Shown one piece after another: positions 29,071 through 63,759 of a DNA stretch of 64,000 nucleotides (its first letter is position 1; the number at the start of each line of letters is the position of its first letter). The translations under genes and the position numbers were made by a program. The notes beneath the pieces were generated by a model that saw nothing but the letters and a program-made list of their open reading frames with translations, did not search any database and had not been told where the DNA came from. Source of the stretch: Selaginella moellendorffii (taxonomy: Eukaryota; Plantae; Lycopodiophyta); contig NW_003314390.1 of NCBI RefSeq assembly GCF_000143415.4, positions 332,343-396,342 of the forward strand, read 5' to 3'.

Positions 29071-30973
29071 ATGTCGTCGTCTTCCGGTTCGACGGGTAAC
29101 TCCCTGCTGAGGATCGCCATGCCGGTAGCGTCTTCTCTCATTCTTGCTTACTATGTCTTCACATTGCCCATGTCGTTCATGGGGGGAGGGGGCAGTGGGG
29201 ATGTCAGGAGTGAAATCACAGGGAATTTGCAAGTTCCGGTTCAGACCAAGGTGGAGGTTTCGGTTGCTCCTCCGGTATCTATAGCTCTGGCCGCTCCAAG
29301 GCAAGCCAAGGAAACGCCCAAGTCGAGCAAGGGACCTGCATTGGAGGACAAGGCAAGCAAAGATCGGAAAGAAGCAGTTCCCAAGCTCAAGAGCTCGGCA
29401 CCCACGAAGACGGCAGGCACGAATTCTCCTCCACCGACAAAGCCAAGGCTCAAAGATCCGGAATTGCCGTTGAAGAAGCCAGCGGCATCTCAGGATTTAA
29501 ACGAAAAGGACGCTGCCAGCAGCACAGATCCGGTCCCTATTCCAGACGACATGGAAACCAAGGTGGATGCGCGTCGCACAGAAGCGAAGAAGGCGAATGT
29601 AGAGGATTTGAGTACGCAGGAATTAGCCACTCAAGAGGATTTCACAGGAGAAGAGCTCGGAGTTGACATTGATGAGGAGACAGGTGTGGGAACGGGAGTT
29701 TTCCACTCTTTTGCCATTTTCAAGAAGAATTATCAGCAAATGTTGAAGAGGTTCAAGATTTTCATCTATCCAGACGGTGATCCAAATACTTACTATCAAA
29801 CACCACGGAAAATCACAGGCAAATACGCTAGCGAAGGTTATTTCTTCCAAAACCTGCGAGAGAGCAAGTTCGTCACCAAAAATCCGAACAAGGCTCATCT
29901 CTTCTTCATCCCCATCTCGTGCCACAAGATGCGAGGAAAGGTACCATGTTTACATTTTTTTCTTCTATTGCTGGAGATTATCTTACCTCAAACTGGAACA
30001 AAATGCAGGGAATTTCTTACGAGAAGATGGCGGATATTGTCCAGGAATACGTGGAAGGCTTGATCGTCAAGTATCCATATTGGAACAGGACGCTCGGTGC
30101 AGACCACTTCTTTGTAACCTGTCATGACGTCGGGGCGAGAGCCACAAACAAAGTTGCAAACCTGGTCAAGAACTCGATACGTGTGGTGTGTTCTCCCAGC
30201 TACAATGGAGATTTCATTCCCCACAAGGACATTGCCATGCCTCAGGTTTTGCAACCATTCGCTTTACCTCGAGGAGGAAACGACGTCAGAAACAGGTACT
30301 CTTGATATTCATTCAACCATGTATGCACTTCCTGGTCCTCACTCTGCGCAGAACAATTCTTGGATTCTGGGCCGGTCATCGAAATTCTAAGATCCGAGTG
30401 GTTTTAGCCAAGCTGTGGGAAGAGGACGATGTTCTAGCCATCAGTAATAACCGGATCAGCAGAGCCACTGGAGAGCTTGTGTACCAGAAGCAGTTTTATA
30501 GGAGCAAATTTTGCATTTGTCCTGGCGGCTCACAAGTCAACAGCGCACGCATCGTCGACTCTATACATTACGGATGCGTGCCAGGTCTTTCTTTCTAAGT
30601 GCTACCATGTGCTCGCCTGACCTCGCGTTTCATGTCACACCAGTGATTCTCTCAGACCATTACGATCTTCCTTTCAACGATGTGCTAGACTGGAAAAGAT
30701 TCGCGTTGCTTTTAAGAGAGCGGGACGTCGGCGATCTTAAGTTGAAGCTCCAATCTGTCTCCAAGGAACAATACTTATCGTTGCACAGGGGACTCGTTGA
30801 GGTTGTTTTTCTTTTCTTTCTTTCTTTTTTCTCCTCGTGTTCTTATTGCCAGCCTTTTTCGACAGGTTCAAGATAGATTTGAATGGCATACACCGCCCAG
30901 GCCTTATGACGCCTTCCACATGGTGGTGTACGAGTTGTGGTTAAGGCACTTCACCGTGCAATACAAGAAATGA
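29071..30973 (+). CDS. Exostosin family (GT47) glycosyltransferase
   Basis: N-terminal TM anchor, low-complexity stem, FKIFIYPDGD, GKYASEGYFF, YPYWNRTLGADHFFVTCHD, SKFCICPGG, GCVPVILSD and YDAFHMVVYELWLR. Confidence 0.95.
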
Positions 30974-44890: not shown

Positions 44891-46449
44891 ATACTTAAGA
44901 TTTGTTGTCCACAAATTCCTAATGCTCGCACTCAAGAAAAGCAATTTCCATCTAAATCTGAGAAAGAGAATAACGTCAAAATCCAACCTGGAGATTACGA
45001 TGATAATGTACCTTGTATTGACCTCAATATAGGCAAGAATCAAATCAATGGAGCAATACTCGATGGAGGCTCAGGCGTGAATATAATCGAGCATGGTATA
45101 TGTAAAGCAATGGGACTTGGACCCATACAACCTGCTCCCTTCAATGTCCGCATAGCAGACCAACATGTTGTAAGACCAGCTGGCATAATAAGAGATATCA
45201 CCATTGGAATCAAAAGACACAAGTTCAAGATCAACTTCGTGGTATTAAAAATGCCAATTGAAAAATCCTCTTATGAACTCTTGCTTGGAAGACCATGGCT
45301 AAACAAAGCAGTTTATGCTCAATATTGGATGGACCGTGAAATTTATATACAATTAGACAAAGGACAAATGAAAATAGCTACAACTACAACCAGGAAAATT
45401 CCGAAAAGATTTCAACCAATTCAAGCCCAAGAATACAATTGGCAAGAAGGCTTGGACGACCTTGAAGAAGCCAAACTCCTTGAAGCTTACCCAGAGCTAC
45501 GAGCTTTTCAAGAAATCAATTTACATCATGTACTACCAGTAGTGGCTCAAGACCAGCACCACAACTTAAATTCGATGGACCAACCACTCTACTCTACAAA
45601 GCTACACGCTCAAAGTCAACAAAGATTAAAGATAAAACAACAAAACGAGAAGCCAACTCTCAAGCCTAAACAATTACAATTTAAAGAATACAACATTCAG
45701 ATTGATGATAATCCAGCCCTACAATCTGGAAATGACAACTTTACACCCCGAATTAACCTCAATGAAGAAACTAAAGAACTCAATCTTGGACTTCAAGAAG
45801 ATCCACACAACATACTCATCGCTGCAAATCTTGAAAAAAACTTCAAGATAAAAGCTCAACAATTACTCATAACCTACAAGGACGTTTTCGCATTGTCATA
45901 CAAAGATCTCAAGGGAATACCCCCGGAACTATGTACACATCGCATAGAGTTACTACCAGGAACTTGACCAATTAAGCAAACAGCTTATCACATGAATCCA
46001 AACTTCACTGATAAAGTCAAAACAGAACTCAACAAACTCCAAAATACTGGATTCATTTACCCTATCAAGAATGCACAATGGTTATCACCATTGGTTATCG
46101 TTCCGAAAAATAACAGCAAATTGTGAATTTGTGTCAATTACAAAAATTTGAACGATGTGACGGAAAAAGACTCTTTTCCTATACCATTCTCAGACGAGAT
46201 ACTCGATGCAGTTGCAGGACATAAGATGTACTCATTCCTCGATGGATTTCAGGATATAATCAAGTTNNNNNNNNNNNNNNNNNNNNNNNNNNNNNNNNNN
46301 NNNNNNNNNNNNNNNNNNNNNNNNNNNNNNNNNNNNNNNNNNNNNNNNNNNNNNNNNNNNNNNNNNAAAAAGAAAAAAAGGGGTCCCCCGCGTCCCCCCC
46401 AGACGGCAGTGCGAACCGCAAATGGCATTGACGTTTTGTCGACCTCGAG

Positions 46450-49400
46450 AGTTTCAAAGTCACTTGCATAGCCTTTGCAAAGCTTTTCCAAAATCCACTA
46501 GTGAACTTTGAATCTCGATCACTAATGATGTCCTCCGGCAAACCAAAATTAGGAAAAACCTTCTCCAAGTAAACCGCAGCCAAGTCTGAGGCAGTGACAG
46601 TCTTCCGAAGAGCCAACAACCGCACATACTTCGTCAACCGATCCACTATGACCCATACTTGCTCCTTTTGCCTCTGTGTTCGTGGCAAACAAGTGATGAA
46701 GTCCATAGAGATACTACACCAACGGCTCTGAGGAATAGGTAAAGGTTGCAAAAGTCCCCCCGGCTTCTCCCGTGGCACCTTAACCCGCTGACAAAGCTCG
46801 CATGATTTACAATACTTGAGGATATCAGCCTTCATATTCCTCCAATAAAAGTTGCGCCTAATCAACTCATACGTCTTCTTCCCCCCAAAATGACCGGCCT
46901 CTGGACGATCATGATAGTGGAATAAAACTTGAGTAATTAACGCATCCACCCGTGGCAAATAGACACGGCCATTGTAGTAGAGAATCCCATCCACCAATGA
47001 GAAAGGAGCTTCCATCTGGTCTCGCAAAGAGGCCACCTCAGCATCCTGAGCCTGAGCATGCTCAACCAACTGCCCAAACTCGCTGACCACCTTACTCAAA
47101 TGATGACAAAATCGTGTTCGTAACGTCGTCACATGACGAACACGAGATAAAGCATCCGCCACCACATTTGATTTTCCCGGACGATGCTCAATAGGAAACT
47201 CCCCAAACTCCATGAGTTTGACCATCCAACGAGCTTGCCTAGTGTTCAACTCCTTCTGTGTGAAAAGATACACAAGTGGTTTGTGATCTGTCAACACCAC
47301 GAACACTACACCATAAAGATAGTGCCGCCACGTCCGCAAAGCATGAACAATAGAGAGTAACTCTTGCTCGTATGTGGAATAGTGTTGCTCCGCGGAATTC
47401 AAAGTTCGACTCTCATATGCAATAGGCTGTCCCTCTTGCATGAGAACTCCTCCCAGTGCATAACCACTCGCATCGCATGCCACCTCGTAAGGTTTCGATG
47501 GATCAGCAATGCGAAGCACTGGAGCCTCGATCAACAATCGTTTCAGCGCCACAAAACTCTCCTCTTGTGGCGTCTTCCACTCGAATGGCACATTCTTGCG
47601 TAACAACCGCGTCAACGGAATAGCCACCTCTGCAAACTTATGCTGGAAACGTCGGTAGTAACTAGCCATACCAAGAAAACTGCGCAACTCGGCCACTGTA
47701 GTCGGTGTAGGCCAGTTTTCCACCACAGCCACCTTCCTTGGATCTGTCGTGACACCCTTAGATGTCACAATATGGCCTAGATATTCCACCTCCGACTTTG
47801 CAAATTCACATTTGCTCTTCTTCGCATAAAGTTTGCTGTCTCGAAGTAACGAAAGAACCTTGTGCAAATGCACCCTATGCTCCTCCATATTCTTGCTAAA
47901 AACAAGAATATCATCCAAGAAAATCTCCACAAACTCATGAAGATAACGCCCAAATACCTCCGTCATCAACCGAGTAAATGTGGCCGGTGCATTCGTCAAA
48001 CCAAACGGCATAACGGTAAACTCAAAATGTCCAAAGCTTGTGTTGAATGCCGTCTTGGAGATAGATGCATCATCTATTGCAATCTGATGATATCCACTCC
48101 TCAGATCAATCTTGGTAAACACTCGTGCTTCACCAAGCTTGTCTAGGATATCATCCACACGTGGCATCGGCATCTTGTCCTTCACTGTCTTCTTGTTTAA
48201 AGCACGGTAGTCAATACACATCCGCATTGAACCGTCCTTCTTCTTCACAAGCAAGACCGGAGCACCAAACGGAGACTTACTTGGCTGAATAAATCCAAAC
48301 TCAAGTAACTCCTTGACTTGTCGTTGAACTTCTTGCTCCTCCGCATAACTTAACCGAAATGGACGCCGGTAAATTGGCCGCGTCCCCGGCTCCAATGTAA
48401 TCCCATGCTCCACACCTCGTAATGGAGGCAATCCATGAGGAAGTTCAGATGGAAAAACATCAGAAAACTCATCAAGTACATCCCGTACTGCTGCTTCTCC
48501 CCCACACGTGCCTTGGTCCCCCAAGTCACGAACAAACAGCAAGTAACTTGAAAGTGCTTTTCCATTACGACAAGCCCGCTTCAAAGATGTAGCAGAGAGC
48601 ATAACAACTGGTGGTTGAACGCCCTCGCCAAACCACACATCTTTAACGCCACCATACTCCAGCGAGATACGCTTAATGCTCCACTTTATCTCTGGATCCA
48701 CCTTCACCAACCATGGCATCCCAAGAATGAGATCCACACGATGGATATCCGCGAGATAAAAAGTCTCCACAAGTGTGGTTTTGCCAACCAACACTTCCAG
48801 CCCCTCGACACAAGCATCGAAATGCTGAGCAAAGGTAGCTGCACCTTCCACTGTGTATGGAACAACTCCACGTGTGTTCAGGCGATGCTCCGCAACAAAC
48901 TTTGCCGAAACAAAGTTGTCATCACTCCCACTATCTAGTAAAATCCGCACTGGATCGCCACGGAACACGCCCTCCAGCATTAAAGCTGATTCATGCGTAT
49001 CCTCGAGCTCCATCTTGTTCCACACACAGTTGAGTTGACGAGCAACGATCGAAAGTTTCTTCCTCCGACCGGAATGGTCGTTCTCGTCATCCTCACGCTG
49101 TAAAGCTTGCAACTTTTTAGTATCTGACTTACCGTGAGAAGATGATTGGCCATTCTTCTTGTCCTGCTGCTTGTTCTTCAACTGCGGACAATCAGCCTTG
49201 TAGTGTCCAAGTTCGCCGCAATGATGACAACCCTGTCTATAATTCTTCACAAAGAACTTTTGCTTCTTGGACCCCTTTGCATCTGAAGTAGTCACCACCG
49301 ACTTCAACTTGTGATGCTTGTTCCCCTCCTTGTGTCCACGGCGATCATCACGACGATTCTCGACAGAAGGACTCCGCGAACGCTTGCGAGACTTGTGCTT

Positions 49401-50403
49401 GTCATTGTCAAGGCGACGAGCCGCATCAAAGAGCTCCTCCAAACTCTTTGTAGGCTGAGAATGACGCAAGTGTTGCCGCATGCTCTCACTATGTAGGCCA
49501 TCAATGAAGTAGGACTTGTTCTGATCTGGATCCTTTGTTGGAACACGACTAATCAAGCGAGTAAGCTTCTCAATATAATCCCCGAGCATCATTTTCCCTT
49601 GCTGGAAATGGCGAAGTTCTGTACGAGCATTCTCCACGTCGTAATGAGGGGCAAAACGTAAATGGAAAGCAGCCTCAAACTCATCCATGGTAGACACTGG
49701 TGGTTTCTTATCCGCAACACGGGACTCCTCAAGCCAATTCCACCATCGAAGACCCGCATCACGCAAAACCATCGGAATAGCCACTAAAGCCTCTGCATCT
49801 GGAGTTCCTCTAGCAGCCAAAAACTTCTTCACATTGGCTAGCCAAGCAAGACACTCGTCCACACCACCATCACCGGAAAAGGTTGGAATCTTGAGTCGAT
49901 CTACCAAAGAAGGCTTACTTGGAGCGCTACCCTGTCTAGCCTCGAGTGCCTCAACACGCCCACGCATGGTATCCATCATGCCATGCATCTCGTCTTGCAT
50001 CTCTTGCTGATTTTTATTAAGGGCTCGCAGCTCATGAACCACATCTTGAATGGTCCAAATCTCCACAGCTTCGTCGGCACCATCGTCGGCACCACCGTCG
50101 GCACCACCATCGATGATAGGATTCCAGCGTTCAGCTTGGTCGGCCATCGCAACCAATTCTCTGATACCAATGTTATGATCCGGCACAAAAAGACAAAGAT
50201 CTAGTTGCCCAAGACTATGCTACGCCACCTCTTGAGGTTCCTCACCACCCAACCACCCCCGAGCTACCTCAAAAGCTCCACTGCGCCGCCGCTCCACTGT
50301 GAGCCCTAGGGTAGGTTAAGTCCCTTACCCTAACATGCCTTAATATACCCTTGAGCCTCCCTTTGACCGACGTTGACCACGTAGTCAAAGCTGGCGCCTA
50401 ACA
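46450..50403 (-). mobile_element. Young Ty3/gypsy (chromovirus-like) element with a single intact gag-pol frame, 3' end lost near the gap
   Basis: Short 5' LTR 50171-50403 (TGTTA...TAACA) and Met PBS at 50159-50169. The ORF from about 50147 has a CCHC knuckle, PR LLDSGS, RT FLDDIL, RNase H (CDAS, EQELL, TDH) and integrase (HHCC, ISMDF, SDRD). Confidence 0.93.
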
Positions 50404-51012
50404 TCCACAGCAAATGCAATGGTCAAGGATTGCTTCAACCGAAATGCATCACAGGGCAGTGGTTAAGTGTTTGCTCAAGCTGGCGAATAGATCAACGATG
50501 CAAAGAATGTTTTTGAGAGGAGACATTGTGTCGTGGATGGGAGCATTGAAAATAAGGGAACAAAGCACATTAGCATACCACCACCGCCTCTGCACCTCAA
50601 GCAGAGATCTTTCTCATGGGCTGTCAAAGCTTGATCTGCTTGGTTCTTGAATGAGAAATCCAGTTTTTCATCATGCTCTTTTCATCATAGAAGAGTAGTG
50701 TTGGAGAAAAAGTTCAGCTAAGAAACGTCAAGCCAAGCCATTTCTGCGAACTTATTCTGCTCAAACTTCAAGCTTGAACTTGTGCCAGAGAACAAGGCTT
50801 CTTGCTTGATGTCCATCATGCTGCAAATGCCAGTAATTGAGCTATGCCTGGAAATTTGGTCACCTCATTGAGTTCAACTGCTCAATTGTCCTTCTTTAGT
50901 TGATACTCAAGCCATGAGCATCTCTAATCAAGATTTCTATCAATTCTGGTGAGATACCAAAATGTCCATAAAAGCAAAATCACAATATATAAGCAGTTGT
51001 TAGCAGTCGTGA

Positions 51013-54000
51013 GCAGCATGTCTCTTCAAAGCGAGGGCCTTTGAAGAAGTGGATATCGAGGATATCCAACTCTTCGAGCGAGATCACTGAGGTGATCTTG
51101 ATCGAAGGACACAGCGTGCTGTATCCTCGGAGCCATCGTTCGAGGCCTACTCGTGTACCTGTCCAAATGCCCACTCCATCATCTATGTACCTTCGTAGAT
51201 AGAAGGGCCAGTCTTTGGTGGCATGCTTGTACTCGGCTTCGAGAGAGCAGAGGAAGAGGCAAGCGTAGACCACTGTGAGTTGGAGCCCATTGCTGTGCCG
51301 CGGATCTGCTGGTAGATGTTACCGTCAAACTCCACGTAGTTGTGCTCCAGGATGAGGGCAGCCGCAGCCATGAGGAACCACGAGCATGTGGTGCTGCCGT
51401 ACTCGGCAAACACAAAGTCACGGAGGCGTTGGAGACCTCATGTGGGGATGCTTGGGTAGAGGCTCTCTACGTTGAACGTGAAGAGCCAGCAATCCTGTGG
51501 GAGCTGTAGGTGGAGGAGGTCCTGTAGCAGCGTGTGCGAGTCGGAAAGAAATGTTGGCTGCTTCAGCAGGATGTCGTAGAGCTGGCGGTGAAGCCAATGC
51601 GCGAGAGGCTCCCACAAAGTCTTGATGTAGCTCGCAATGGGTTGGCCCTTTATTGGCTGCTTGTGTATTTTTGGAAGAAAATAAATCATGCAAGCCTGCC
51701 GAGGTACGGCGGGCTGGTGCAGCAGGAACTGCTGCATGGAGTTGTCGAGCCACGAGCAGCTGCGGTACTTTGTGATGAGCTCGGCAAGGCATTCCTGGAG
51801 AGATTTGGATGGCACGGTGGGGACCTTCACATAAACGAGTGGGTCGTTCAGTTGGCGGAGAGCCTCCTTCATGTACCAATCGCGATCCAGCACCACCTCT
51901 CCAAGGTTTTTGTCCGCAGGCTTGATGACGATGGATGTGTCTGTTGCGAGAGAGTGGAGAGCACGCTTTTTCCAACCGTGAGCGAAGGAGCGAGGCTTGT
52001 GTGCTCCTTCCAGCCTGTGGAGCAGGCTGCCTCGCACGTGTGCAAGGCGCCGTTCCACATGCGCTGGTGCTGGAGGTGGCTCGAAGCTCGGGTTCGGTAC
52101 TCGAAACTCCGGCAGGGCTGAGTCGTCGTCCTTGAAGAGGTGACGGAGTCAGACGGCTCGGCAGAGAGCATCAGAGCTTTCCACGATCTGTAGGGCTCTA
52201 AGCGGTGCCAGGTTTGGGATGTACCTCAGGCCGAGGGAGAGGAGGCGGATCTCGGCAGCCGAAAGAGCCCTGCTCGAGAGGTTGTGTACGGCTCTAGTCT
52301 CCACTCGATTCTCGAACTTCGAGACTGGCCGTTGTCCCGCAGTGTCGAGGATGGCCTTAGACGGACTGGTCAGTGGTGACCAGTAGTCTTGAGGATTCCC
52401 CTCATGGGGACTTTGGCGGTTGGCAAGCGTGAGCGCGAGTGAGAGCGGCGTCGTGGTGCTGGGGTCCTGCTCCTGCGGCTGCCAGGGGTCTGGCTCTGTC
52501 CAGGGCGAGGTCGAGGGCTGCGTGTGTGAGCTCCCTTGCTGCCTCTGGTCGGTGAATGTCCTCGCGGTCGCTGGGGACCTAAGTTGACCGGTGCCGGTGT
52601 CGTGGAGCGAGGGTGCTGCTGCGGGGAGCTGCTGCGGCTGGAACAGTGAGGGCCATCGCGTCCAGCGTTCTTTTCGTGGGAACCATGCTGGGCTGGAGAT
52701 GTCCGGCGCAGAGTCCCCCTCGAAGAAGAAGCCAATGCAGCAGAATGGGTGGGAGGAGTCCCAGTAGCCCCGTTCCGCCGCTGTCCGTTTCCCTGGTCGT
52801 TGCGGGCGGGTGTTGCCGACCGGGATCCGGCTTCATCAGCGTTGGCGGCAAAGGAGACACGGTGCTTCTTGCCCAAATCCTGCGCATGCTTACCCGGTGT
52901 GCCGTCACGTTGCTCTCGCGCTTTGTTCTTCTTTTCTCGCTTTCTCTTCTTTTTTCCTGCATTCGACGGCGTAGCATGTCACTGGCTTTGGAGGGCCTTC
53001 GTAACAGCGGCGTTCACAAGCTCTGCGATGGTCTGCTCCTTGGGGAGGGCATCCACAGAGGCGTTCGCCACATCGATGGCTTCCTCCAGTTGCCGCGTCG
53101 CCGTCGTCTGCACTCGTGCTCGATTCCCTTGCCGGCCATAAAGAACGATGTCTCAGTGTGGAACTTGAGGGTACACCGTTGCTTTAGAGCGAGCAGGTGG
53201 TGGTAGACAGCATCATGCTCCGTGGCGCTGCAGTAACTGAGTGTGGAGGTGACGAGATCCTCGAGTCAGCTGCAAAAGAGATCCCTGAGACCCGAGGAGA
53301 CAAGTCTCTGGAGTGTCTCGATCTCGTCCTCACGAGCCTTAATGAGAATGTCATGCAGCTCCTTGAGATAGCGCTCGTGCGCCTCAGCAATTCTGCTCGT
53401 GAGGCCGTCCTGGGCATGTCGAGACACCTTGAGCTTTGGTGGGCGTGTGTGGAGCGACTGCAGGCATTTCTTCTGCTCTTTCAGGTCCTTGAGGCCCTGG
53501 AGAGCTGATCTCGATGACACCAGAGTGTTGTACTCTTGCAGAAATTCTCACAGGGAGCTCGCAAGGATGCTGTTGAAGGCTCCATTGATGTTCTTGAAGC
53601 CTCCAAGTGTGTAGCCATCTTCTGCTCCAGTGGCCAGTGGCGGAGGTGGCGCAGCCGGTGGCTCGGGCATATGTCCCGGGGCTGGCTGGCCTGAGCATCG
53701 CTCTGGCTGGGGAGGGATGGCCTCAGCATCTGTGCATGTCCTCTGTGCTGCTGGGTGGTCTCGCGGTGGCAGAGCGACCGGAGGGTCCACTGGAGCAGGG
53801 GGAGGACGTCGCAGCTCCTGCGATGCTGCACGCTGAGATGCATGCGTCTGCGTTGTGCGTGTCGAGGGTGCCCGCTGTGCTGGTGAGGCCCGTGGTGTCA
53901 GGGGTGGCGGTCCAGCCTCGGGAGAGCGAGGTGTGGACGGCCGTTCTGGCATCGAGGTGTGAGGAGGCGTTCGTGGAGTCCGTGGCGAAGGTGTCGGGCG

Positions 54001-54944
54001 CGGAGGCGTAGACACCGGCTGCTCCTGTCGGTGGGACGTGGTGGGCCTGGGCTGGATAGGTCGTGAGACAGAGCCATGCATCGCGGGTGATAGAGGCTGT
54101 CGTAGCAAGCCAGGTCCTGGAAGGCCTCTCTCCGATGGGGGTCGCTGCTCTGCTGCCATGGCAGGGGCAGGCCTGGGTGGCAATGACACAGGATTCGGCA
54201 CCACGGGTGGTGGGAAGATCCGTCACATCGCTGTAGCACTTGACTCTCGCGTTCGTCGTGGATGGCCTCAGCGAGGAGCTGGGAGTGTTCCCGCGACGAG
54301 GTAGCTCGTGACATGGTTCCCAGCTCAAATTGAAGCACTGGAGCTGGAGGAACTGGAGCGTAACCTGTCTCTGCAGTAGCCATGGCGTGGTTGGAGCTCC
54401 CTGGTGCTGCTGGCCTTGGTGGTATGAGCAGTGAGGGGTCCATGACGTCGTGACTGTCCAGTATAGGCACTAGAGCGGCAGATGGTAAAGGTGGCTGTGG
54501 CATCGCTGGCATCACTGGGTGTCACTGGTGGCAGCCGTAGTGCTGGGGACAGCCGCGGTGCTAGAGACGCTGCACAGCGCTGGGCGGCGCGGGGTGGTAC
54601 CGGGTGTTACAGGTGGTACCGCGCGTCTGCCCTGCCCTCTCCTCCTCTCTGGACGCGTACCACGTACCGCCTGAATATTCCGAGAATATTCCCTGCAAAG
54701 TGAACCACGTTTTTCGTCGCCGGGTACGCACAAGTGACACAAGCATTGTGGACGTAACGCATGCATCATATCATGCCGCGTTTACAAGTTATCTTGCGTC
54801 GAAGGTACGTCACCCGCCGGACGAATGCTTACTGTTTTCGGCAATCCGCCGAAGTCATTCTCCGCGACTACCACTGCTGTGGAGTCACCAACCCCAGCTG
54901 TGCTACGTTCGCATCCTCATGAGCCAACGCCGCCATGCACTTCG
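51013..54944 (-). mobile_element. Telomeric EN-minus Penelope-like element copy 1 (oldest, degenerate, 3' end missing)
   Basis: Homologous to 60425-63675 with frameshifts and CpG-type substitutions. RT is cut after GPRFEET. It has an extra 5' region at 54240-54670 and an inverted 3'-UTR segment at 54673-54944. Confidence 0.93.
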
Positions 54945-55109
54945 GTTTACGGTTTAGGGTTTAGGGTTCAAGGGTTTAGGGTTTAGGGTTTAGGGTTTAG
55001 GGTTTTAGGGTTTAGGGTTTAGGGTTTAGGCGCGTTTAGGGTTTAGGGTTTTAGGGTTTAGGGTTTAGGGTTTAGGGTTTAGGGTTTAGGCGCGTTTAGG
55101 CGTTTAGGG
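54945..55109 (+). repeat. Interstitial telomeric tract 1 (TTTAGGG)n with GGCGCG variants
   Basis: Seen directly in the sequence. Confidence 0.98.
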
Positions 55110-57055
55110 TCAAAGACACCCCGCGGTGTTGCAATCCGGCGAGATCGCGGCACCACTTTGCGCAATCCACATTCTCCATGTGCCGTTGTCGAAACGGCGT
55201 GATCGAGAGCAAGTAGAGGAGGCAAGAGAATGAATTTTCATTCATTCGCGAGCGAGGGAGAAGACAAGAGACAACCCGAGACCGGTTTCGTCCTTTTTGG
55301 GACTCATCAGCCGGGTGTAGTCGTCTAACGTCTACCCTAACCCTAGCTCGGCGCCGGCTCTACTTATATTCTGGCTCTGTCACGTGGCGCGAGTCCGAGT
55401 GGCAGCCATGCGAGGTGCATGGCGGCGTTGGCTCGCGAGGATGCGAACGTAGCACAGCTGGTGTTGGTTACTCCACAGCAGTGGTAGTCGCGGAGAATGA
55501 CTTCGGCGGATCGCCGAAGACAGTAAGCGTTCGTCCGGCGGGTGACGTACCTTCGACACAAGATAACTTGTAAACGCGGCATGATATGATGCATGCGTTA
55601 CGTCCACAATGCTTGTGTCACTTGTACGTACCCGGGGGCGAAAAACGTGGTTCACTTTGCAGGGAATATTCTCGGAATATTCGGTCGTTGACCGTTGACC
55701 CCGCGTTGACCGTGTGTGGACTGGGATGGTGGAGGGCCTGAGGTCACTCATACATACCCGGAGTCCAGCGGTTACATGGGGGAGAGCCATCCTGCGAGCT
55801 GTCGGCATGTGTCGCCGATGTCGAGGGAGCGGCACCGTTTTAATGGAAAACATGCTTTTCCACAGGTCGTGTGTGGAGTTCAGAGTTGAAACTCACATAT
55901 TCACGATCGGAAGGAAGAGCAGAATCCAACAGTATATGCCGTTTTGACTCGGTCAACAGGGATACAGTCGGAATATTGGGGAATATTCCGTTCTGACCGT
56001 TGACTCCGCGTTGACCGGGCGTTGACTCGAAAGGGGGGTGGCCTGGAGTGACTTGGGACATACCTGAAGTCCATCGGCGAGACCCTGGGAGTCATCGGGT
56101 ACGCGGAGAAAGATGCAAACATAAGTGTCCGTGTCTTGCAAAGTGCGGTACAAGACGTGGCTAAGCTCGCAGAGGGAGCTTAGCCCTGACCAGAAATGAA
56201 CCGAGGTTCGGGGAGCGTCTCCAGCACGTGATCACTCGGGGGAGTGTGTCTGCGGGAGCTTCATCCATCACCTGTTTAGGGTTTAGGATGTCCCCCAAGC
56301 CTAGCTGCGCACTGTGGAGTGTGTAGGGCAGCTTGAAGGCGAGGGGGGCCCGTCGACAGGCGTCGCTAGAGCGGCGCGAACGTGCAAGGAGAGCTTGATG
56401 TCGCTGGTCGTAGGAGATGCCGGAGAAGCAGTGGTGGAGGAAGGAGGTCGGGTATCCTCGGGCACGGAGGCGGTGGTAGAACCGCGTGCGCATGGCGTAG
56501 AATCCATCGGCCGTGCTCTCGCGGAGGAGGTATCTCCGGAGCTCGCTGCGGATGAATGCCACTTTTTGGTGCCGTGGGTGAACCGACGTCCAGGGGAGGT
56601 ACTGGTAGGCGTTGAGCGGCTTCTGGAACGTGGACGAGTCGAGGCAGCCTGTCTCTTCAAAGCGAGGGCCTTTGAAGAAGTGGATATCGAGGATATCCAA
56701 CTCTTCGAGCGAGATCACCGAGGTGATCTTGATCGAAGGACACAGCGTGCCGTATCCTCGGAGCCATCGTTCGAGGCCTGCTCGTGTACCTGTCCAAATG
56801 CCCACTCCGTCATCTATGTACCTTCGTAGGTACAAGGGCCAGTCGTTGGTGGCATGCTTGTACTCGGCTTCGAGAGAGCAGAGGAAGAGGCAAGCGTAGA
56901 CCACCGCGAAGTTGGAGCCCATTGCTGTGCCGCGGATCTGCTGGTAGATGTTACCATCAAACTCCACGTAGTTGTGCTCCAGAACGAGGGCAGCCGCAGC
57001 CATGAGGAACCGCGAGCGTGTGGTGTTGCCGTACTCGGCAAACACAAAGTCGCGG
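55110..57055 (-). mobile_element. Telomeric PLE copy 2 (5'-truncated inside RT)
   Basis: RT C-terminal half at 56161-57045 (GTAMGS, YIDD) plus a 3' UTR of about 1.05 kb, capped by telomeric repeats. Confidence 0.95.
55271..55325 (-). ncRNA. Minimal type I hammerhead ribozyme
   Basis: The minus strand reads ACACCCGG-CUGAUGA-GUCC(CAAAAA)GGAC-GAA-ACCGGU-C^UCGGGUUGU: complete catalytic core, stems I and II, and palindromic stem III. Predicted cleavage is between 55280 and 55279. Confidence 0.9.
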
Positions 57056-57224
57056 TTTTTAGGGTTTAGGTTTTAGGGTTTAGGGTTTAGGGTTTTAGGG
57101 TTTAGGGTTTAGGGTTTAGGGTTTAGGGTTTTAGGGTTTAGGGTTTAGGGTTTAGGGTTTAGGGTTTAGGGTTTAGGGTTTAGGGTTTAGGGTTTAGGGT
57201 TTAGGCGCGTTTAGGCGTTTAGGG
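57056..57224 (+). repeat. Interstitial telomeric tract 2
   Basis: (TTTAGGG)n ending TTTAGGCGCGTTTAGGCGTTTAGGG. Confidence 0.98.
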
Positions 57225-58632
57225 TCAAAGACACCCCGCGGTGTTGCAATCCGGCGAGATCGCGGCACCACTTTGCGCAATCCACATTCTCCGTGTGCCG
57301 TTGTCGAGACGGCGTGATCGAGAGCAAGTAGAGGAGGCAAGAGAATGAATTTTCATTCATTCGCGAGCGAGGGAGAAGACAAGAGACAACCCGAGACCGG
57401 TTTCGTCCTTTTTGGGACTCATCAGCCGGGTGTAGTCGTCTAACGTCTACCCTAACCCTAGCTCGGCGCCGACTCTACTTATATTCTGGCTCTGTCACGT
57501 GGCGCGAGTCCGAGTGGCAGCCATGCGAAGTGCATGACGGCGTTGGCTCGCGAGGATGCGAACGTAGCACAGCTGGGGTTGGTGACTCCACAGCAGTGGT
57601 AGTCGCGGAGAATGACTTCGGCGGATCGCCGAAGACAGTAAGCGTTCGTCCGGCGGGTGACGTACCTTTGACGCAAGATAACTTGTAAACGTGGCATGAT
57701 ATGATGCATGCATTACGTCCACAATGCTTGTGTCACTTGTGCGTACCCGGCGACGAAAAACGTGGTTCACTTTGCAGGGAATATTCTCGGAATATTCGGT
57801 CGTTGACCGTTGACCCCGCGTTGACCGTGTGTGGACTGGGATGGTGGGGGGCCTGAGGCCACTCATACATACCCGGAGTCCAGCGGTTACATGGGGGAGA
57901 GCCATCCTGCGAGCTGTCGGCATGTGTCGCCGATGTCGAGGGAACGGCACCGTTTGAACGGAAAACATGCTTTTCCACGAGTCGTGTGTGGAGTTCAGAG
58001 TTGAAACTCACATATTCACGATCGGAAGGAAGAGCAGAATCCAACGGTATATGCCGTTTTGACTCGGTCAACAGGGATACAGTCGGAATATTGGGGAATA
58101 TTCCGTTCTGACCGTTGACTCCGCGTTGACCGGGCGTTGACTCGGAAGGGGGGTGGCCTGGAGTGACTTGGGACATACCTGAAGTCCATCGGCCAGACCC
58201 TGGGAGTCATCGAGTACGCGGAGAAGGATGCAAACATAAGCTTCCGTGTCTTGCAAAGTGCGGTACAAGACGTGGCTAAGCTCGCGGAGGGAGCTTAGCC
58301 CTGACCAGAAACGAACCGAGGTTCGGGGAGCGTCTCCAGCACGTGATCACTCGAGGGAGTGTGTCTGTGGGAGCTTCATCCATCACCTGTTTAGGGTTTA
58401 GGATGTCCCCCAAGCCTAGCTGCGCACTGTGGAGTGTGTAGGGCAGCTTGAAGGCGAGGGGGGCCCGTCGACAGGCGTCGCTAGAGCGGCGCGAACGTGC
58501 AAGGAGAGCTTGATGTCGCTGGTCGTAGGAGATGCCGGAGAAGCAGTGGTGGAGGAAGGAGGTCGGGTATCCTCGGGCACGGAGGCGGTGGTAGAACCGC
58601 GTGCGCATGGCGTGGAATCCATCGGCCGTGCT
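57225..58632 (-). mobile_element. Telomeric PLE copy 3 (severely 5'-truncated)
   Basis: Last ~118 codons of RT plus the full 3' UTR, capped by telomeric repeats. Confidence 0.95.
57386..57440 (-). ncRNA. Minimal type I hammerhead ribozyme (copy 3)
   Basis: Identical to 55271-55325. Confidence 0.9.
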
Positions 58633-58896
58633 TAGGGTTTAGGGTTTAGGGTTTAGGGTTTTAGGGTTTAGGTTTAGGGTTTAGGGTTTAGGGTTTAGGG
58701 TTTAGGTTTAGGGTTTAGGGTTTAGGGTTTAGGGTTTAGGGTTTAGGGTTTAGGGTTTAGGGTTTAGGGTTTAGGGTTTAGGGTTTAGGGTTTAGGGTTT
58801 AGGGTTTAGGGTTTAGGCGCGTTTAGGGTTTTAGGGTTTAGGGTTTAGGGTTTAGGGTTTAGGGTTTAGGGTTTAGGCGCGTTTAGGCGTTTAGGG
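58633..58896 (+). repeat. Interstitial telomeric tract 3
   Basis: (TTTAGGG)n with two GGCGCG variants. Confidence 0.98.
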
Positions 58897-59057
58897 TCAA
58901 AGGCACCCCGTGGTGCTGCAATCCGGCGAGATCGCGGCGCCACTTTGTGCAATCCACATTCTCCGTGTGCCGTTGTCGAGACGGCGTGATCGAGAGCAAG
59001 TAGAGGAGGCAAGAGAATGAATTTTCATTCATTCGCGAGCGAGGGAGAAGACAAGAG

Positions 59058-59112
59058 ACAACCCGAGACCGGTTTCGTCCTTTTTGGGACTCATCAGCCG
59101 GGTGTAGTCGTC
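59058..59112 (-). ncRNA. Minimal type I hammerhead ribozyme (copy 4)
   Basis: Identical core and stems to the other two copies. Confidence 0.9.
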
Positions 59113-59947
59113 TAACGTCTACCCTAACCCTAGCTCGGCGCCGACTCTACTTATATTCTGGCTCTGTCACGTGGCGCGAGTCCGAGTGGCGGCCATGCGA
59201 AGTGCATGACGGCGTTGGCTCGCGAGGATGCGAACGTAGCACAGCTGGGGTCGGTGACTCCACAGCAGTGGTAGTCGCGGAGAATGACTTCGGCGGATCG
59301 CCGAAGACAGTAAGCGTTCGTCCGGCGGGTGACGTACCTTTGACACAAGATAACTTGTAAACGTGGCATGATATGATGCATGCGTTACGTCCACAATGCT
59401 TGTGTCACTTGTGCGTACCCGGCGACGAAAAACGTGGTTCACTTTGCAGGGAATATTCTCGGAATATTCGGTCGTTGACCGTTGACCCCGCGTTGACCGT
59501 GTGTGGACTGGGATGGTGGGGGGCCTGAGGCCACTCATACATACCCGGAGTCCAGCGGTTACATGGGGGAGAGCCATCCTGCGAGCTGTCGGCATGTGTC
59601 GCCGATGTCGAGGGAACGGCACCGTTTTAACGGAAAACGTGCTTTTCCACGAGTCGTGTGTGGAGTTCAGAGTTGAAACTCACATATTCACGATCGGAAG
59701 GAAGAGCAGAATCCAACGGTATATGCCGTTTTGACTCGGTCAACAGGGATACAGTCGGAATATTGGGGAATATTCCGTTCTGACCGTTGACTCCGCGTTG
59801 ACCGGGCGTTGACTCGAAAGGGGGGTGGCCTGGAGTGACTTGGGACATACCTGAAGTCCATCGGCCAGACCCTGGGAGTCATCGAGTACGCGGAGAAGGA
59901 TGCAAACATAAGCTTCCGTGTCTTGCAAAGTGCGGTACAAGGCGTGG

Positions 59948-61726
59948 CTAAGCTCGCGGAGGGAGCTTAGCCCTGACCAGAAACGAACCGAGGTTCGGGG
60001 AGCGTCTCCAGCACGTGATCACTCGAGGGAGTGTGTCTGTGGGAGCTTCATCCATCACCTGTTTAGGGTTTAGGATGTCCCCCAAGCCTAGCTGCGCACT
60101 GTGGAGTGTGTAGGGCAGCTTGAAGGCGAGGGGGGCCCGTCGACAGGCGTCGCTAGAGCGGCGCGAACGTGCAAGGAGAGCTTGATGTCGCTGGTCATAG
60201 GAGATGCCGGAGAAGCAGTGGTGGAGGAAGGAGGTCGGGTATCCTCGGGCACGGAGGCGGTGGTAGAACCGCGTGCGCATGGCGTGGAATCCATCGGCCG
60301 TGCTCTCGCGGAGGAGGTATCTCCGGAGCTCGCTGCGGATGAATGCCACTTTTTGGTGCCGTGGGTGAACCGACGTCCAGGGGAGGTACTGGTAGGCGTT
60401 GAGCGGCTTCTGGAACGTGGACGAGTCGAGGCAGCCTGTCTCTTCAAAGCGAGGGCCTTTGAAGAAGTGGATATCGAGGATATCCAACTCTTCGAGCGAG
60501 ATCACCGAGGTGATCTTGATCGAAGGACACAGCGTGCCGTATCCTCGGAGCCATCGTTCGAGGCCTGCTCGTGTACCTGTCCAAATGCCCACTCCGTCAT
60601 CTATGTACCTTCGTAGATAGAAGGGCCAGTCGTTGGTGGCATGCTTGTACTCGGCTTCGAGAGAGCAGAGGAAGAGGCAAGCGTAGACCACCGCGAAGTT
60701 GGAGCCCATTGCTGTGCCGCGGATCTGCTGGTAGATGTTACCGTCAAACTCCACGTAGTTGTGCTCCAGAACGAGGGCAGCCGCAGCCATGAGGAACCGC
60801 GAGCGTGTGGTGTTGCCGTACTCGGCAAACACAAAGTCGCGGAGGCGTTGGAGACCTTCTCGTGTGGGGATGCTTGGGTAGAGGCTCTCTACGTCGAACG
60901 TGAAGAGCCAGCAGTCCCGCGGGAGCTGTAGGTGGAGGAGGTCCTGTAGCAGCGTGCGCGAGTCGGAAAGAAACGTTGGCTGCTTCAGCAGGATATCGTA
61001 GAGCTGGCGGTGAAGCCAACGCGCGAGGGGCTCCCACAACGTACCGATATAGCTTGCGATGGGTCGGCCCTTTATTGGCTGCTTGTGTATTTTCGGAAGA
61101 AAATACATCATGCAAGCCTGCCGGGGTACGGCGGGCTGGTGCAGCAGGAACTGCTGCGTGGAGTTGTCGAGCCACGAGCAGCTGCGGTACTTTGTGATGA
61201 GCTCGGCGAGGCGTTCCTGGAGGGATTTGGATGGCACGGAGGGGACCTTCACATAAACGAGTGGGTCGTTCAGTTGGCGGAGAGCCTCCTTCGTGTACCA
61301 ATCACGATCCAGCACCACCGCTCCAAGATTTTTGTCCGCAGGCTTGATGACGATGGATGTGTCCGTTGCGAGAGAGTGGAGAGCACGCTTTTTCCAACCG
61401 TGAGCGAAGGAGCGAGGCTTGTGTGCTCCTTCCAGCCTGTGGAGCAGGCTGCCTCGCACGTGTGCAAGGCGTCGTTCCACATACGCTGGTGCTGGAGGCG
61501 GCTCGAAGCTCGGGTTCGGTACTCGGAACTCCGGCAGGGCTGAGTCGTCGTCCTTGAAGAGGTGACGGAGTCGGACGGCTCGGCAGAGAGCATCAGAGCT
61601 TTCCACGATCTGTGGGGCTCTGAGCGGTGCCGGGTTCGGGATGTACCGCAGGCCGAGGGAGAGGAGACGGATCTCAGCGGCCGAGAGAGCCCTGCTTGAG
61701 AGGTTGTGTACAGCTCCAGTCTCCAC
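59948..61726 (-). CDS. Penelope-like reverse transcriptase without GIY-YIG endonuclease
   Basis: PLE motifs VHNLS...LLSLGLRY, IKPADKN, YFLPKIHK, RPI, FDVESLYPSI, QIRGTAMGS, RYIDD, LDI and the FQKP...HP thumb. The ORF ends without a GIY-YIG domain. The annotated start is GTG. Confidence 0.95.
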   Translation of the reverse strand: METGAVHNLSSRALSAAEIRLLSLGLRYIPNPAPLRAPQIVESSDALCRAVRLRHLFKDDDSALPEFRVPNPSFEPPPAPAYVERRLAHVRGSLLHRLEGAHKPRSFAHGWKKRALHSLATDTSIVIKPADKNLGAVVLDRDWYTKEALRQLNDPLVYVKVPSVPSKSLQERLAELITKYRSCSWLDNSTQQFLLHQPAVPRQACMMYFLPKIHKQPIKGRPIASYIGTLWEPLARWLHRQLYDILLKQPTFLSDSRTLLQDLLHLQLPRDCWLFTFDVESLYPSIPTREGLQRLRDFVFAEYGNTTRSRFLMAAAALVLEHNYVEFDGNIYQQIRGTAMGSNFAVVYACLFLCSLEAEYKHATNDWPFYLRRYIDDGVGIWTGTRAGLERWLRGYGTLCPSIKITSVISLEELDILDIHFFKGPRFEETGCLDSSTFQKPLNAYQYLPWTSVHPRHQKVAFIRSELRRYLLRESTADGFHAMRTRFYHRLRARGYPTSFLHHCFSGISYDQRHQALLARSRRSSDACRRAPLAFKLPYTLHSAQLGLGDILNPKQVMDEAPTDTLPRVITCWRRSPNLGSFLVRAKLPPRA

Positions 61727-61791
61727 TCGGTTCTCGAACTTCGAGACTGGCCGTTGTCCCGCAATGTCGAGGATAGCCTTAGACGGACTGG

Positions 61792-63690
61792 TCAGTGGTG
61801 ACCAGTAGTCTTGAGGATTCCCCTCACGGGGACTTTGGCGGTTGGCGAACGTGAGCGCGAGCGAGAGCGGCGTCGTGGTGCTGGGGTCCTGCTCCTGCGG
61901 CTGGCAGGGGTCTGGCTCCGTCCAGGGCGAGGTCGAGGGCTGCGTGTGCGAGCTCCCTTGCTGCCTCTGGTCGGTGAACGTCCTCGAGGTCGCTGGGGAC
62001 CTGAGGTGACCGGTGCCGGTGTCGTGGAGCGTGGGCGCCCCTGTGGGGAGCTGCTGCGGCCAGAACGGTGAGGGCCATCGCGTCCAGCACTCTTTTCGCG
62101 GGAACCAGGCCGGGCTGGAGATGTCCGGCGCGGAGTCCCCCTCGAAGAAGAAGCCGATGCAGCGGAACGGGTGGGAGGAGTCCCAGTAGCCCCGTTCCGC
62201 CGCTGTCCGTTTCCCTGGTCATTGCGGGCGGGTGTTGCCGACCGGGATCCAGCTTCGTCGGCGTTGGCGGCGAAGGAGACGCGGTGCCTCTTGCTCGATT
62301 CCTGCGCATGCTTACCCGGTGTGCCGTCACGTTGCTCTCGCGCTTTGTTCTTCTTTTCTCGCTTTCTCTTCTTTTTTCCTGCATTCGACGGCGTGGCATG
62401 TCGCTGGCTTTGGAGGGCCTTCGTAACAGCGGCGTTCACAAGCTCTGCCATGGTCTGCTCTTTGGGGAGGGCATCCGCAGAGGCGTTCGCCGCATCGATG
62501 GCTTCCTCCAGTCGCCGCGTCGCTGTCGTCTGCGCTCGGTGCTCGATTCCCTTGCCGGCCATAAAGAACGATGTCTCAGTGTGGAACTTGAGGGTACACC
62601 GTTGTTTGAGGGCGAGCAGGTGGTGGTAGACGGCATCATGCTCCGTGGCGCTGCAGTAGCTGAGTGTGGAGGTGACAAGATCCTCGAGTCGGCTGCGAAA
62701 GAGATCCCTGAGACCCGAGGAGACGAGCCTCTGGAGTGTCTCGATCTCGTCCTCGCGAGCCTTAATGAGAATGTCGTGCAGCTCCGTGAGGTAGCGCTCG
62801 TGCGCCTCAGCAATTCTGCTCGTGAGGCCGTCCTGGGCATGTCGAGACACCTTGAGCTTCGGTGGGCGTGTGCGGAGCGACTGCGGGCGTTTCTTCTGCT
62901 CTTTCAGGTCCTTGAGGCCCTGGAGAGCTGATCTCGACGACACCAGAGTGTTGTACTCCTGCAGAAATTCTCGCAGGGAGCTCGCAAGGATGCTGTTGAA
63001 GGCTCCATCGATGTTCTTGAAGCCTCCAAGTGTGTAGCCATCTTCTGCTCCAGTGGCCAGTGGCGGAGGTGGCGCAGCCGGTGGCTCGGGCGTTCGTCCC
63101 GGAGCTGGCTGGCCTGAGCATCGCTCTGGCTGGGGAGGGATGGCCTCAGCATCTGTGCGTGTCCTCTGTGCTGCTGGGTGGTCTCGCGGTGGCGGAGCAA
63201 CCGGAGGGTCCACTGGAGCAGGGGGAGGACGTCGCAGCTCCTGCGACGCTGCACGCGGAGATGCCTGCGTCCGTGTCGTGCGTGTCGAGGGTGCCCGCTG
63301 TGCTGGTGAGGCCCGTGGTGTCAGGGGCGGCGGTCCAGCCTCTGGAGAGCGAGGTGTGGATGGCCGTTCTGGCATCGAGGTGTGAGGAGGCGTTCGTCGA
63401 GTCCGCGGCGAAGGTGTCGGGCGCGGAGGCGTAGACACTGGCTGCTCCTGTCGGTGGGACGTGGTGGGCCTGGGCTGGACAGGTCGTGAGACAGAGCCAT
63501 GCGTCGCGGGTGACGGAGGCTGTCGCAAGGGCTGTCGCAGTGGGCCAGGTCCTGGAAGGCCTCTCTCCGATGGGGGTCGCTGCTCTGCTGCCATGGCAGG
63601 GGCAGGCCTGGGCGGCGATGAAACGGGATTCGGCACCACGGGTGGTGGGAAGATCCGTCGCATCGCTGTAGCACTCGGATCTGCAGTCAA
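61792..63690 (-). CDS. PLE ORF1: Pro-rich N-terminus, helical/coiled-coil core, basic NLS-like stretch and Arg/Ser-rich tail
   Basis: 632-codon open frame conserved (with lesions) in copy 1 at 52370-54240. It is probably N-terminally incomplete. Confidence 0.85.
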   Translation of the reverse strand: MTADPSATAMRRIFPPPVVPNPVSSPPRPAPAMAAEQRPPSERGLPGPGPLRQPLRQPPSPATHGSVSRPVQPRPTTSHRQEQPVSTPPRPTPSPRTRRTPPHTSMPERPSTPRSPEAGPPPLTPRASPAQRAPSTRTTRTQASPRAASQELRRPPPAPVDPPVAPPPRDHPAAQRTRTDAEAIPPQPERCSGQPAPGRTPEPPAAPPPPLATGAEDGYTLGGFKNIDGAFNSILASSLREFLQEYNTLVSSRSALQGLKDLKEQKKRPQSLRTRPPKLKVSRHAQDGLTSRIAEAHERYLTELHDILIKAREDEIETLQRLVSSGLRDLFRSRLEDLVTSTLSYCSATEHDAVYHHLLALKQRCTLKFHTETSFFMAGKGIEHRAQTTATRRLEEAIDAANASADALPKEQTMAELVNAAVTKALQSQRHATPSNAGKKKRKREKKNKAREQRDGTPGKHAQESSKRHRVSFAANADEAGSRSATPARNDQGNGQRRNGATGTPPTRSAASASSSRGTPRRTSPARPGSREKSAGRDGPHRSGRSSSPQGRPRSTTPAPVTSGPQRPRGRSPTRGSKGARTRSPRPRPGRSQTPASRRSRTPAPRRRSRSRSRSPTAKVPVRGILKTTGHH

Positions 63691-63759
63691 AGGGCCAGGG
63701 TTGGCAGGGAGGACCCCATGCGGGTAGGCTCCACGGTCCCGTAGGAGGGACTCAAACGG

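Follow-up and report, generated by a model that had tools for sequence, protein, structure and literature searches.

Telomere-associated elements with hammerhead motifs

We analyzed a window of 64,000 nucleotides (nt) of Selaginella moellendorffii DNA (contig NW_003314390.1, positions 332,343 to 396,342 of the forward strand; all coordinates below are those of this 64-kb window). Its right end consists of telomere repeats, and the adjoining region carries four copies of one retroelement, a Penelope-like element (PLE). In three of these copies a hammerhead ribozyme motif is placed between the open reading frames (ORFs) and a telomeric tail. The copies, all on the minus strand, were delimited by a BLAST comparison of positions 58898-63757 with the window. 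The best preserved of them, copy C, encodes an ORF1 and a reverse transcriptase (RT), and 845 nt separate its RT stop codon from the hammerhead. The features of the array are as follows.

63758-64000, plus: terminal (TTTAGGG)n, reaching the window end
58898-63757, minus: copy C, the reference, apparently full length, 4860 nt
61792-63690, minus: ORF1 of copy C
59948-61726, minus: RT ORF of copy C, 592 amino acids (aa)
59056-59113, minus: hammerhead of copy C (Rfam core 59061-59103), cleavage predicted at 59067/59066, after GUC
58898-59066, minus: spacer of copy C, 169 nt from the cleavage site to the tail
58632-58897, minus: (CCCTAAA)n tail and telomere tract of copy C, including element-coded variant repeats beside the spacer
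57226-58632, minus: copy B, 99.0% identical to C, 5'-truncated within the RT ORF
57384-57441, minus: hammerhead of copy B (Rfam core 57389-57431), cleavage predicted at 57395/57394
57226-57394, minus: spacer of copy B
57058-57225, minus: tail and telomere tract of copy B
55111-57055, minus: copy A, 97.8% identical to C, 5'-truncated within the RT ORF
55269-55326, minus: hammerhead of copy A (Rfam core 55274-55316), cleavage predicted at 55280/55279
55111-55279, minus: spacer of copy A
54944-55110, minus: tail and telomere tract of copy A
51005-54672, minus: copy D, 94.4% identical to C over 51005-54240, 3' part lost

The 3' part of copy D, including any hammerhead, is missing from position 51005, beside a Ty3/gypsy element, and was found nowhere else in the 64-kb window. 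The 5' end of copy D is longer than that of copy C and different from it, with no match to C from 54240 to 54672.

The ribozyme motif

A cmscan search of the whole window against Rfam, at the gathering threshold, returned exactly three matches, one in each of copies A, B and C and all of them to Hammerhead_1 (RF00163, clan CL00010), the type I class. Each scored 40.5 bits against a gathering value of 34 (E = 7.8e-07). The motif is made up of stem I (ACCCGG/UCGGGU), CUGAUGA, stem II (GUCC/GGAC, with the loop CAAAAA), GAAA, the sequence ACCGGU and C17. Its catalytic core comprises CUGAUGA, GAAA and GUC followed by U across the cleavage point, the cleavage-site nucleotide being other than G, and both ends of the motif lie within helix I, which is the type I topology. 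In copy C, the Rfam core is lengthened to 59056-59113 by a distal part of stem I (AGACG/UGUCU) together with a bulge of 5 nt. The extended motif is supported by an HH9-type alignment made with the identical S. moellendorffii copy, and our own covariance model, R1, scores it at 54.8 bits in copy C and also detects copies A and B. Judged from its sequence, the motif is thus a bona fide type I hammerhead, conserved and predicted to be catalytically competent.

An earlier note on this DNA had reported three identical hammerheads with cleavage at 55280/55279 in the first of them, a helix III consisting solely of the palindrome ACCGGU and a telomeric tail about 170 nt away. All of this was borne out: the three motifs are identical over the 55-nt spans given there and far past them (alignment A3), the predicted cleavage point is the same, ACCGGU was read as the whole of helix III in all three copies, and 169 nt (59066-58898 in copy C) lead from the predicted cleavage site to the first CCCTAAA. 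The placement on the sense strand holds for the element, whose ORF1 and RT ORF are on the minus strand, but the motifs are not on the plus strand of the window. The same note had described the hammerheads as minimal, and this description does not fit, as the motif scores above threshold with the full type I model, has an HH9/Schistosoma-like loop II and a stem I bulge, and is of a kind called canonical in the literature on the Selaginella elements (PMC4209133).

The secondary structure was also approached by folding. In minimum free energy folds of the monomer, the CCGG of stem I preferentially pairs with the CCGG of helix III, and the folded dimer is just 2-3 kcal/mol better than two monomers, so thermodynamic folding alone makes no decision between monomer and dimer. 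The spacer folds at -55.1 kcal/mol (z -2.16), a modest signal, and compensatory changes in its hairpins are few among the four near-identical copies.

An endonuclease-lacking Penelope-like element

The best database match of the RT ORF is an S. moellendorffii protein (66% identity, E 3e-257), and other relatives occur in Cryptomeria (a conifer), Ginkgo and Closterium. The RT ORF also matches, over 99% of the query and with E 3e-61, a tick protein of 865 aa composed of RVT_1 together with a GIY-YIG domain at its C terminus, which is the canonical Penelope architecture. A Pfam scan of ORF1 and the RT ORF gave a weak RVT_1 match and no endonuclease (GIY-YIG) domain, and a sequence search of PDB with the RT gave no match. 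The 3' end of the element is the reverse complement of telomere repeats, and the 5'-truncated copies stand head to tail at a chromosome end between telomere repeats. With these sequence features the carrier of the hammerheads is classed as an endonuclease-lacking PLE of the Athena/Coprina type, attached to the chromosome end; the RT ORF and the array together support the attribution to PLEs made in the earlier note.

Conservation and covariation of the hammerhead

Since the three window copies are paralogues (97.8-99.0% identical), they amount to one independent observation, and independent support comes from relatives. The closest is a locus on S. moellendorffii scaffold GL377752.1 (L001), 93.3% identical to window positions 59698-58914 over 786 nt, where the hammerhead core is identical at 43/43 nt. 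We then examined the DNA around eight RT relatives with 37-46% RT identity: L002 (Closterium), L003-L005, L006-L009, L010, L011 and L012-L014. Rfam gave no match at the gathering threshold on ten related loci and one weak HH9 match at E <= 1. Rfam misses most of these hammerheads, whose stem I is short, and a scan for the core motif combined with model R1 was used instead. One sense-strand hammerhead was found per relative unit, between the RT stop codon and the telomeric motif; in the L003 scaffold a 100-N gap lies beside a hammerhead. The free evidence from the relatives is limited to the stems (I, III), the position and the strand.

The covariation alignment (A1) holds eight sequences, seven of them distinct, from Closterium to Selaginella. 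Paired cells make up 82.4% of it, against 58.7 +/- 3.6 in column shuffles (0/500 reach 82.4%) and 24-39% in slid registers. Both-sided changes occur in 11 of the 13 pairs, with compensatory changes in stems I and II. Across the seven distinct sequences position 7 is occupied by U or A, G is absent from position 17, where C, U or A is found, and the A15.1-U16.1 pair is invariant; the variation seen in these sequences at positions 7 and 17 is what catalysis requires.

Helix III is 100% paired, while its 6-nt palindrome differs by lineage (ACCGGU, ACUAGU, AUGCAU, ACAUGU, AUCGAU). The central pair of the palindrome is complementary in 7/7 distinct sequences, with four pair types. This covariation points to a helix formed between two hammerheads, because a hairpin would leave both central bases in the loop. 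The palindromic helix III supports a ribozyme that would be active only when two copies pair, and the dimeric action suggested in the earlier note gains from the same observation. These elements have kept the hammerhead throughout their green-lineage clade.

A putative promoter ahead of the hammerhead

Directly upstream of the hammerhead, each of the three copies has a candidate promoter module.

59119-59173, minus: putative promoter of copy C, with a G-box CACGTG at 59173-59168, TATAAG at 59155-59150 and a telobox-like CTAGGGTTAGGGTAG at 59133-59119
57447-57501, minus: putative promoter module of copy B, TATA at 57483-57478
55332-55386, minus: putative promoter module of copy A, TATA at 55368-55363

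The sense strand of the 4860-nt element contains a single TATAA, and it lies 58 nt before CUGAUGA. For the window element the chance of a TATAA or TATATA within a 26-position stretch is 0.005. Such per-locus chances were computed for five loci (the window element, L002, L006, L010 and L011), and the arrangement in the relatives is the following.

L002 (Closterium): TATA at -40 before CUGAUGA, the sole TATAA in the 6024-nt unit, chance 0.004
L006: TATA at -39 before CUGAUGA, chance 0.05
L010: TATA at -52 before CUGAUGA, chance 0.03
L011: TATA at -53 before CUGAUGA, chance 0.05
L012: TATA at -47 before CUGAUGA
L005: no TATA ahead of the hammerhead, two G-boxes instead

Counting the window element, a TATA box is thus located 37-58 nt before CUGAUGA in 6 of 7 lineages. 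With a start 25-35 nt past the TATA box, the hammerhead would be at the extreme 5' end of the transcript. What looks like a 3' untranslated region (UTR) would then be a promoter module resembling a pseudo-long terminal repeat (pLTR), and the hammerhead would probably stand at the 5' start of a transcript that continues past the tail into the element that follows. The earlier note had placed the hammerhead in the 3' UTR; it does lie between the ORFs and the tail, but it is also just downstream of the only TATA box of the element. The note's remark that cleavage would part the ORF-bearing RNA from the tail is correct as to position, the site lying between the two.

At the place of the telobox-like CTAGGGTTAGGGTAG of the window element, Closterium has CTAGGGTAG. 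Pairing of the G-rich telobox-like motif with the C-rich tail is a further possibility. Further upstream in the 3' UTR, palindromes of the GGAATATTC type, like gapped heat-shock elements, occur at 59450-59527 and 59757-59832 (minus strand); they are also present at L001 7790-7815 and 7950-7975, and both RT families of S. moellendorffii described below have them.

Tandem and cyclic units in relatives

In the relatives, the region from the RT stop codon to the next ORF1 was recovered in one piece. It consists of 170-920 nt, a TATA box, the hammerhead, a spacer of about 340-560 nt and a telomeric motif. In lineages L003-5, L011 and L012-14 the telomeric motif is 12-17 nt long and is followed 8-35 nt later by the ORF1 ATG. 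Several of the units are tandemly repeated: L005 has a period of 4863 with 100% identity, L002 a period of 6024 with 99.9% identity, and the units of L004 are 100% identical. L012 and L013 are contigs of 3937 nt whose ends overlap exactly over 30 nt. Together with L014 (3922 nt) they are rotations of one 3907-nt circle with different break points, obtained from three sequencing runs (Logan contigs). The order around this circle is ORF1, RT, TATA box, hammerhead, spacer and the 12-nt motif AAACCCTAAACC. Such cyclic contigs derive either from a perfect array of tandem units or from a circular molecule.

RNA-seq evidence

Three stranded RNA-seq runs (X24, X22 and the contig run X1), labelled with the organism of the datasets that best matched this DNA, were placed on window positions 58860-63757, at low depth and in 164-nt bins. 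All 290 of the 290 placed reads are oriented as sense-strand RNA, and the element is thinly covered over its whole length. The depth in the bins around the hammerhead is given below.

59188-59351: X24 0, X22 2.7
59024-59187: X24 9.75, X22 4.7
58860-59023: X24 17.8, X22 11.5

The X24 depth remains 0 through 59679, and the RNA depth climbs below about 59100-59150, across the hammerhead. In X1, one contig (depth 8.6) ends at about 59117 and another (depth 83) starts at 59058, leaving uncovered the 58 nt between them, which are the hammerhead. The step in depth fits an upstream start site, partial cleavage with a stabler 3' fragment, or extra genomic copies of the terminal module. Cleavage at 59066 as the sole source of the read 5' ends was rejected, on the rough argument that the coverage of bin 59024-59187 exceeds that of 43 nt at the neighbouring depth.

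RNA reads also cross a 33-nt tail into other sequence that is absent from the window, and the 30-nt sequence reached by reads past the tail was found neither in the window nor in L001. Since the reads leave a short tail into non-window sequence, the best-expressed copy appears to be located elsewhere and to be read through.

Formation of the array

The G-rich strand of the terminal tract is on the plus strand, so the 3' tails of the elements point to the centromere. Copy C adjoins telomere repeats at its 5' end, 94 nt ahead of the first ORF1 ATG. Telomere tracts of 167, 168 and 266 nt merge with the tails of A, B and C, respectively, and the last 13 kb of the window are GC-rich (0.55-0.62). 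The truncation points also differ, being equivalent to 60842, 60304 and full length. These unlike truncation points and tract lengths argue that the copies were added singly and not by duplication, and a rolling-circle or tandem-duplication origin of the window array is ruled out on the same grounds. In copies A, B and C the tail, the spacer, the hammerhead and the upstream body form one contiguous stretch. Such contiguity over the cleavage site in all three copies implies that the copied RNAs were uncleaved, or rejoined, at this site.

The tails differ in their variant repeats. CGCGCC occurs twice, 60 nt apart, in the tails of A (55030-55100) and C (58808-58897), and once only in that of copy B (57195-57225). 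This pattern fits priming at unequal depths in a tail that is coded by the element and at least 90 nt long. Beside the telomere tract, the 5' end of copy D is capped by an inverted 3' UTR fragment (54673-54944; 96% identical to its equivalent, 59469-59198), which recalls the inverted 5'-truncated copies described in other PLEs.

A second RT family with the same tail

S. moellendorffii contains a second RT family, represented by a neighbour in L001 with 66% protein identity. This element lacks both the TATA box and the hammerhead, while it keeps the last 115 nt or so of the spacer (window 59029-58917) and the tail. The presence of tail and 115 nt without a hammerhead indicates that the hammerhead is not needed for the copying step itself. 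It also narrows the claim of the earlier note that every 3' UTR has a hammerhead, which is true of the three window copies but not of this S. moellendorffii element.

Two regions of L001 (7743-8233 and 671-786) share a terminal module that includes a common 1.64-kb spacer insertion and are 98% identical, an identity that suggests recombination or template switching between the RT families. L001 also contains, at 2632-2720, an extremely truncated copy made up of the last 37 nt or so of the spacer and the tail. The tail variant CCTAAATCC is common to this copy and to the RNA reads at window position 58871.

Proposed processing and alternative explanations

In sense order, the terminal module of the element consists of the G-box and TATA box, about 40 nt, the hammerhead, the 169-nt structured spacer and the (CCCUAAA)n tail. 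We consider it likely that the window motifs are type I hammerheads belonging to this module of an endonuclease-lacking, telomere-attaching Selaginella PLE, and that they take part in the following scheme of read-through and pairing. Transcription would begin in a distal element, past its TATA box and ahead of its hammerhead, and the transcript would cross spacer, tail and telomere tract to enter the neighbouring element on the centromere side. This would be a case of 'promoting in tandem', the arrangement that Danilevskaya et al. in 1997 reportedly described for HeT-A at Drosophila telomeres, where a promoter at the 3' end drives the downstream neighbour. HeT-A is a non-LTR (long terminal repeat) element without a ribozyme and without a telomeric tail; the likeness is functional only, and the promoter proposed here is putative. 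An RNA spanning a whole element would have a hammerhead at each end. The two could pair through helix III and cut, which would yield a ribozyme-to-ribozyme unit enclosing the telomeric primer-binding tract, while a lone hammerhead would stay mostly uncut. The G-rich chromosome overhang would anneal to the tail, and the RT would prime there and copy toward the 5' end of the RNA. If a unit were cut at both ends, its tail would be near the 5' end, and either circularization by ligation or a jump between templates would be needed to give the DNA observed.

At its furthest the scheme makes the hammerhead the first item transcribed from the sole promoter of the element rather than a 3' UTR device. 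The replicative unit would be bounded by ribozymes and would enclose the telomeric primer-binding tract, the promoter would be supplied by the upstream neighbour, paired hammerheads would define both RNA ends, and the template copied by the RT would be circular or longer than one unit. We put this forward tentatively, as a possibility and not as the expected outcome. If true, conservation of its layout would extend from zygnematophyte algae to lycophytes, and a single scheme would connect telomeric PLEs, pLTRs and retrozymes.

Several observations weigh against the scheme of read-through and pairing. The window copies are separate additions between long telomere tracts and give by themselves no evidence of circular templates or of templates longer than a unit, and the second-family element was copied with the same tail despite having no TATA-hammerhead module. 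At the coverage of our RNA-seq data, which is low, there is no pile-up of read ends at 59066/59067 above threshold, and the bin sums imply that some reads span 59066. The step in depth could reflect read-through of many short genomic copies of the terminal module, with no start site. The promoter role of the TATA box is read from the DNA letters. The scan of the relatives demanded CUGANGA...GAAA, so that the conservation of the core is partly by construction. Finally, target-primed reverse transcription in vitro did not depend on the hammerhead of a PLE, and no read ends marked the cut site of that hammerhead (PMC11167929).

Part of this evidence would also suit a hammerhead that is mainly a fold near the 3' end, binding the RT or presenting the tail to the overhang, with negligible cleavage in vivo. 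The genomic copies contiguous over the cleavage site and the missing read ends are as such a role would have them, the fold has been proposed to expose the tail in Terminons, where according to the relevant section of PMC6431247 the tail directly follows the hammerhead, and the hammerhead of the lizard PLE works with protein assistance and is not required for insertion in vitro (PMC11167929). However, the full catalytic core has been kept, with position 17 never G and only position 7 free, and the central pair of helix III covaries, which is relevant solely to a dimer. Nor is the hammerhead adjacent to the tail, the distance being 169 nt here and about 340-560 nt in the relatives, and an element without a hammerhead still has the tail and was copied. 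On balance we regard a purely structural role as unlikely.

Another explanation is that the TATA-hammerhead module is a selfish, retrozyme-like passenger exploiting the RT and tail of the PLE, a kind of parasitism raised by Craig et al. (PMC8557442). The module is separable, as the terminal 115 nt and the tail of the second RT family in L001 occur without it, and the terminal module is far better represented in RNA than the body of the element. Yet there is one hammerhead, in the same place, in every coding unit of eight relatives from Closterium to Selaginella, and it accompanies the only TATA box of the element. Such constant placement better fits a long-standing integral part, and the passenger explanation seems to us improbable, more so than the structural one. 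That the motif is a chance or decayed match without function is hardly credible at all, being refuted by the Rfam E value of 7.8e-07 per copy, by the 43-nt core identical in a 93%-identical copy and by the covariation among relatives. A type I hammerhead integral to the terminal module of the PLE, acting by read-through and pairing, is the reading that we retain.

Relation to described elements

Much of what is reported here has been described before. The hammerheads of S. moellendorffii telomeric PLEs were published in 2014 by Cervera and de la Pena (fig. 3A of PMC4209133), and the passages of that paper dealing with them place the hammerheads 'in the PLTRs'. Its text on PLE and other type I hammerheads describes a dimeric action, and its Discussion puts forward, as a hypothesis, the release of ribozyme-to-ribozyme units, circles and a ligation/template route. 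Compared by description with these published elements, which are those of Gladyshev and Arkhipova 2007, the window element is of the same type, with HH9/Schistosoma-like loops. As far as the passages on the Selaginella hammerheads go, nothing essential differs, and the TATA box, the 169-nt spacer and the RNA-seq depth are what is added here. The co-occurrence of hammerheads and reverse-complement telomeric repeats in endonuclease-lacking PLEs is likewise on record (PMC8557442, PMC6431247). The hammerhead, its association with the telomeric tail, the dimer action and the unit/circle hypothesis are therefore already known.

Athena and Terminon elements of bdelloid rotifers (Arkhipova et al. 2017, as reported in the sections of PMC6431247 and PMC8557442 concerned with them) likewise have an endonuclease-lacking RT, 5'-truncated head-to-tail chains and a hammerhead upstream of a telomeric tail. 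In those accounts the tail is immediately downstream of the hammerhead, whereas here a 169-nt structured spacer intervenes and the repeat is the plant CCCTAAA. The pLTR of Penelope contains a transcription start (PMC8557442) and a hammerhead (PMC4209133, PMC11167929), and internal initiation is documented for a PLE (PMC11167929). In Penelope of D. virilis, in Chlamys-3_cRei (PMC8557442) and in the lizard PAc (PMC11167929) the promoter/hammerhead region is likewise between the end of the ORFs and the start of the next, and in tandem units the upstream copy drives the downstream copy, as proposed here. Unlike the Selaginella element, these three encode a GIY-YIG endonuclease and integrate within chromosomes; the inter-coding region of the present element also has a telomeric primer-binding tract.

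Retrozymes (PMC4918200, PMC7229834, bioRxiv 10.64898/2026.07.22.740005) share the ribozyme-to-ribozyme unit and a proposed circular intermediate, and the non-LTR retrozymes of animals have a dimer-prone type I hammerhead, as here. Plant retrozymes, in contrast, have type III hammerheads in true LTRs together with a primer-binding site and a polypurine tract, while the window units have type I hammerheads and no LTRs and encode ORF1 and the RT. Being coding, with a type I hammerhead and without LTRs, the window units are not retrozymes.

In the papers on PLEs and hammerheads that were consulted we did not find a TATA box directly ahead of the hammerhead across a green-lineage clade, a spacer of at least 169 nt contrasting with the adjacent tail of Athena, the covariation of the palindrome in plants and algae, or cyclic contigs. 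These sequence-derived additions are modest extensions. Given that the hammerhead and the dimer/circle idea are published, the finding alone adds little, and the comparative picture could be useful to specialists. The placement of the TATA box, the palindrome covariation, the tandem and cyclic units and the depth step make an old processing hypothesis testable by end mapping in a plant with a small genome. PLE RTs are the nearest relatives of telomerase RT, and how PLE RNA is produced, trimmed and primed at chromosome ends is relevant to the origin of telomerase.

Other features of the window

The inner edge of the PLE array is at position 51005, where Ty3/gypsy sequences (42968-51005) adjoin copy D. 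They include the following ORFs.

46260-50186, minus: Ty3/gypsy gag-pol ORF, 1308 aa
42968-44890, plus: Ty3/gypsy gag ORF

In the AT-richer, gene-bearing part of the window, the ORF at 29071-30063 has a weak match to Exostosin GT47, which fits a plant genome.

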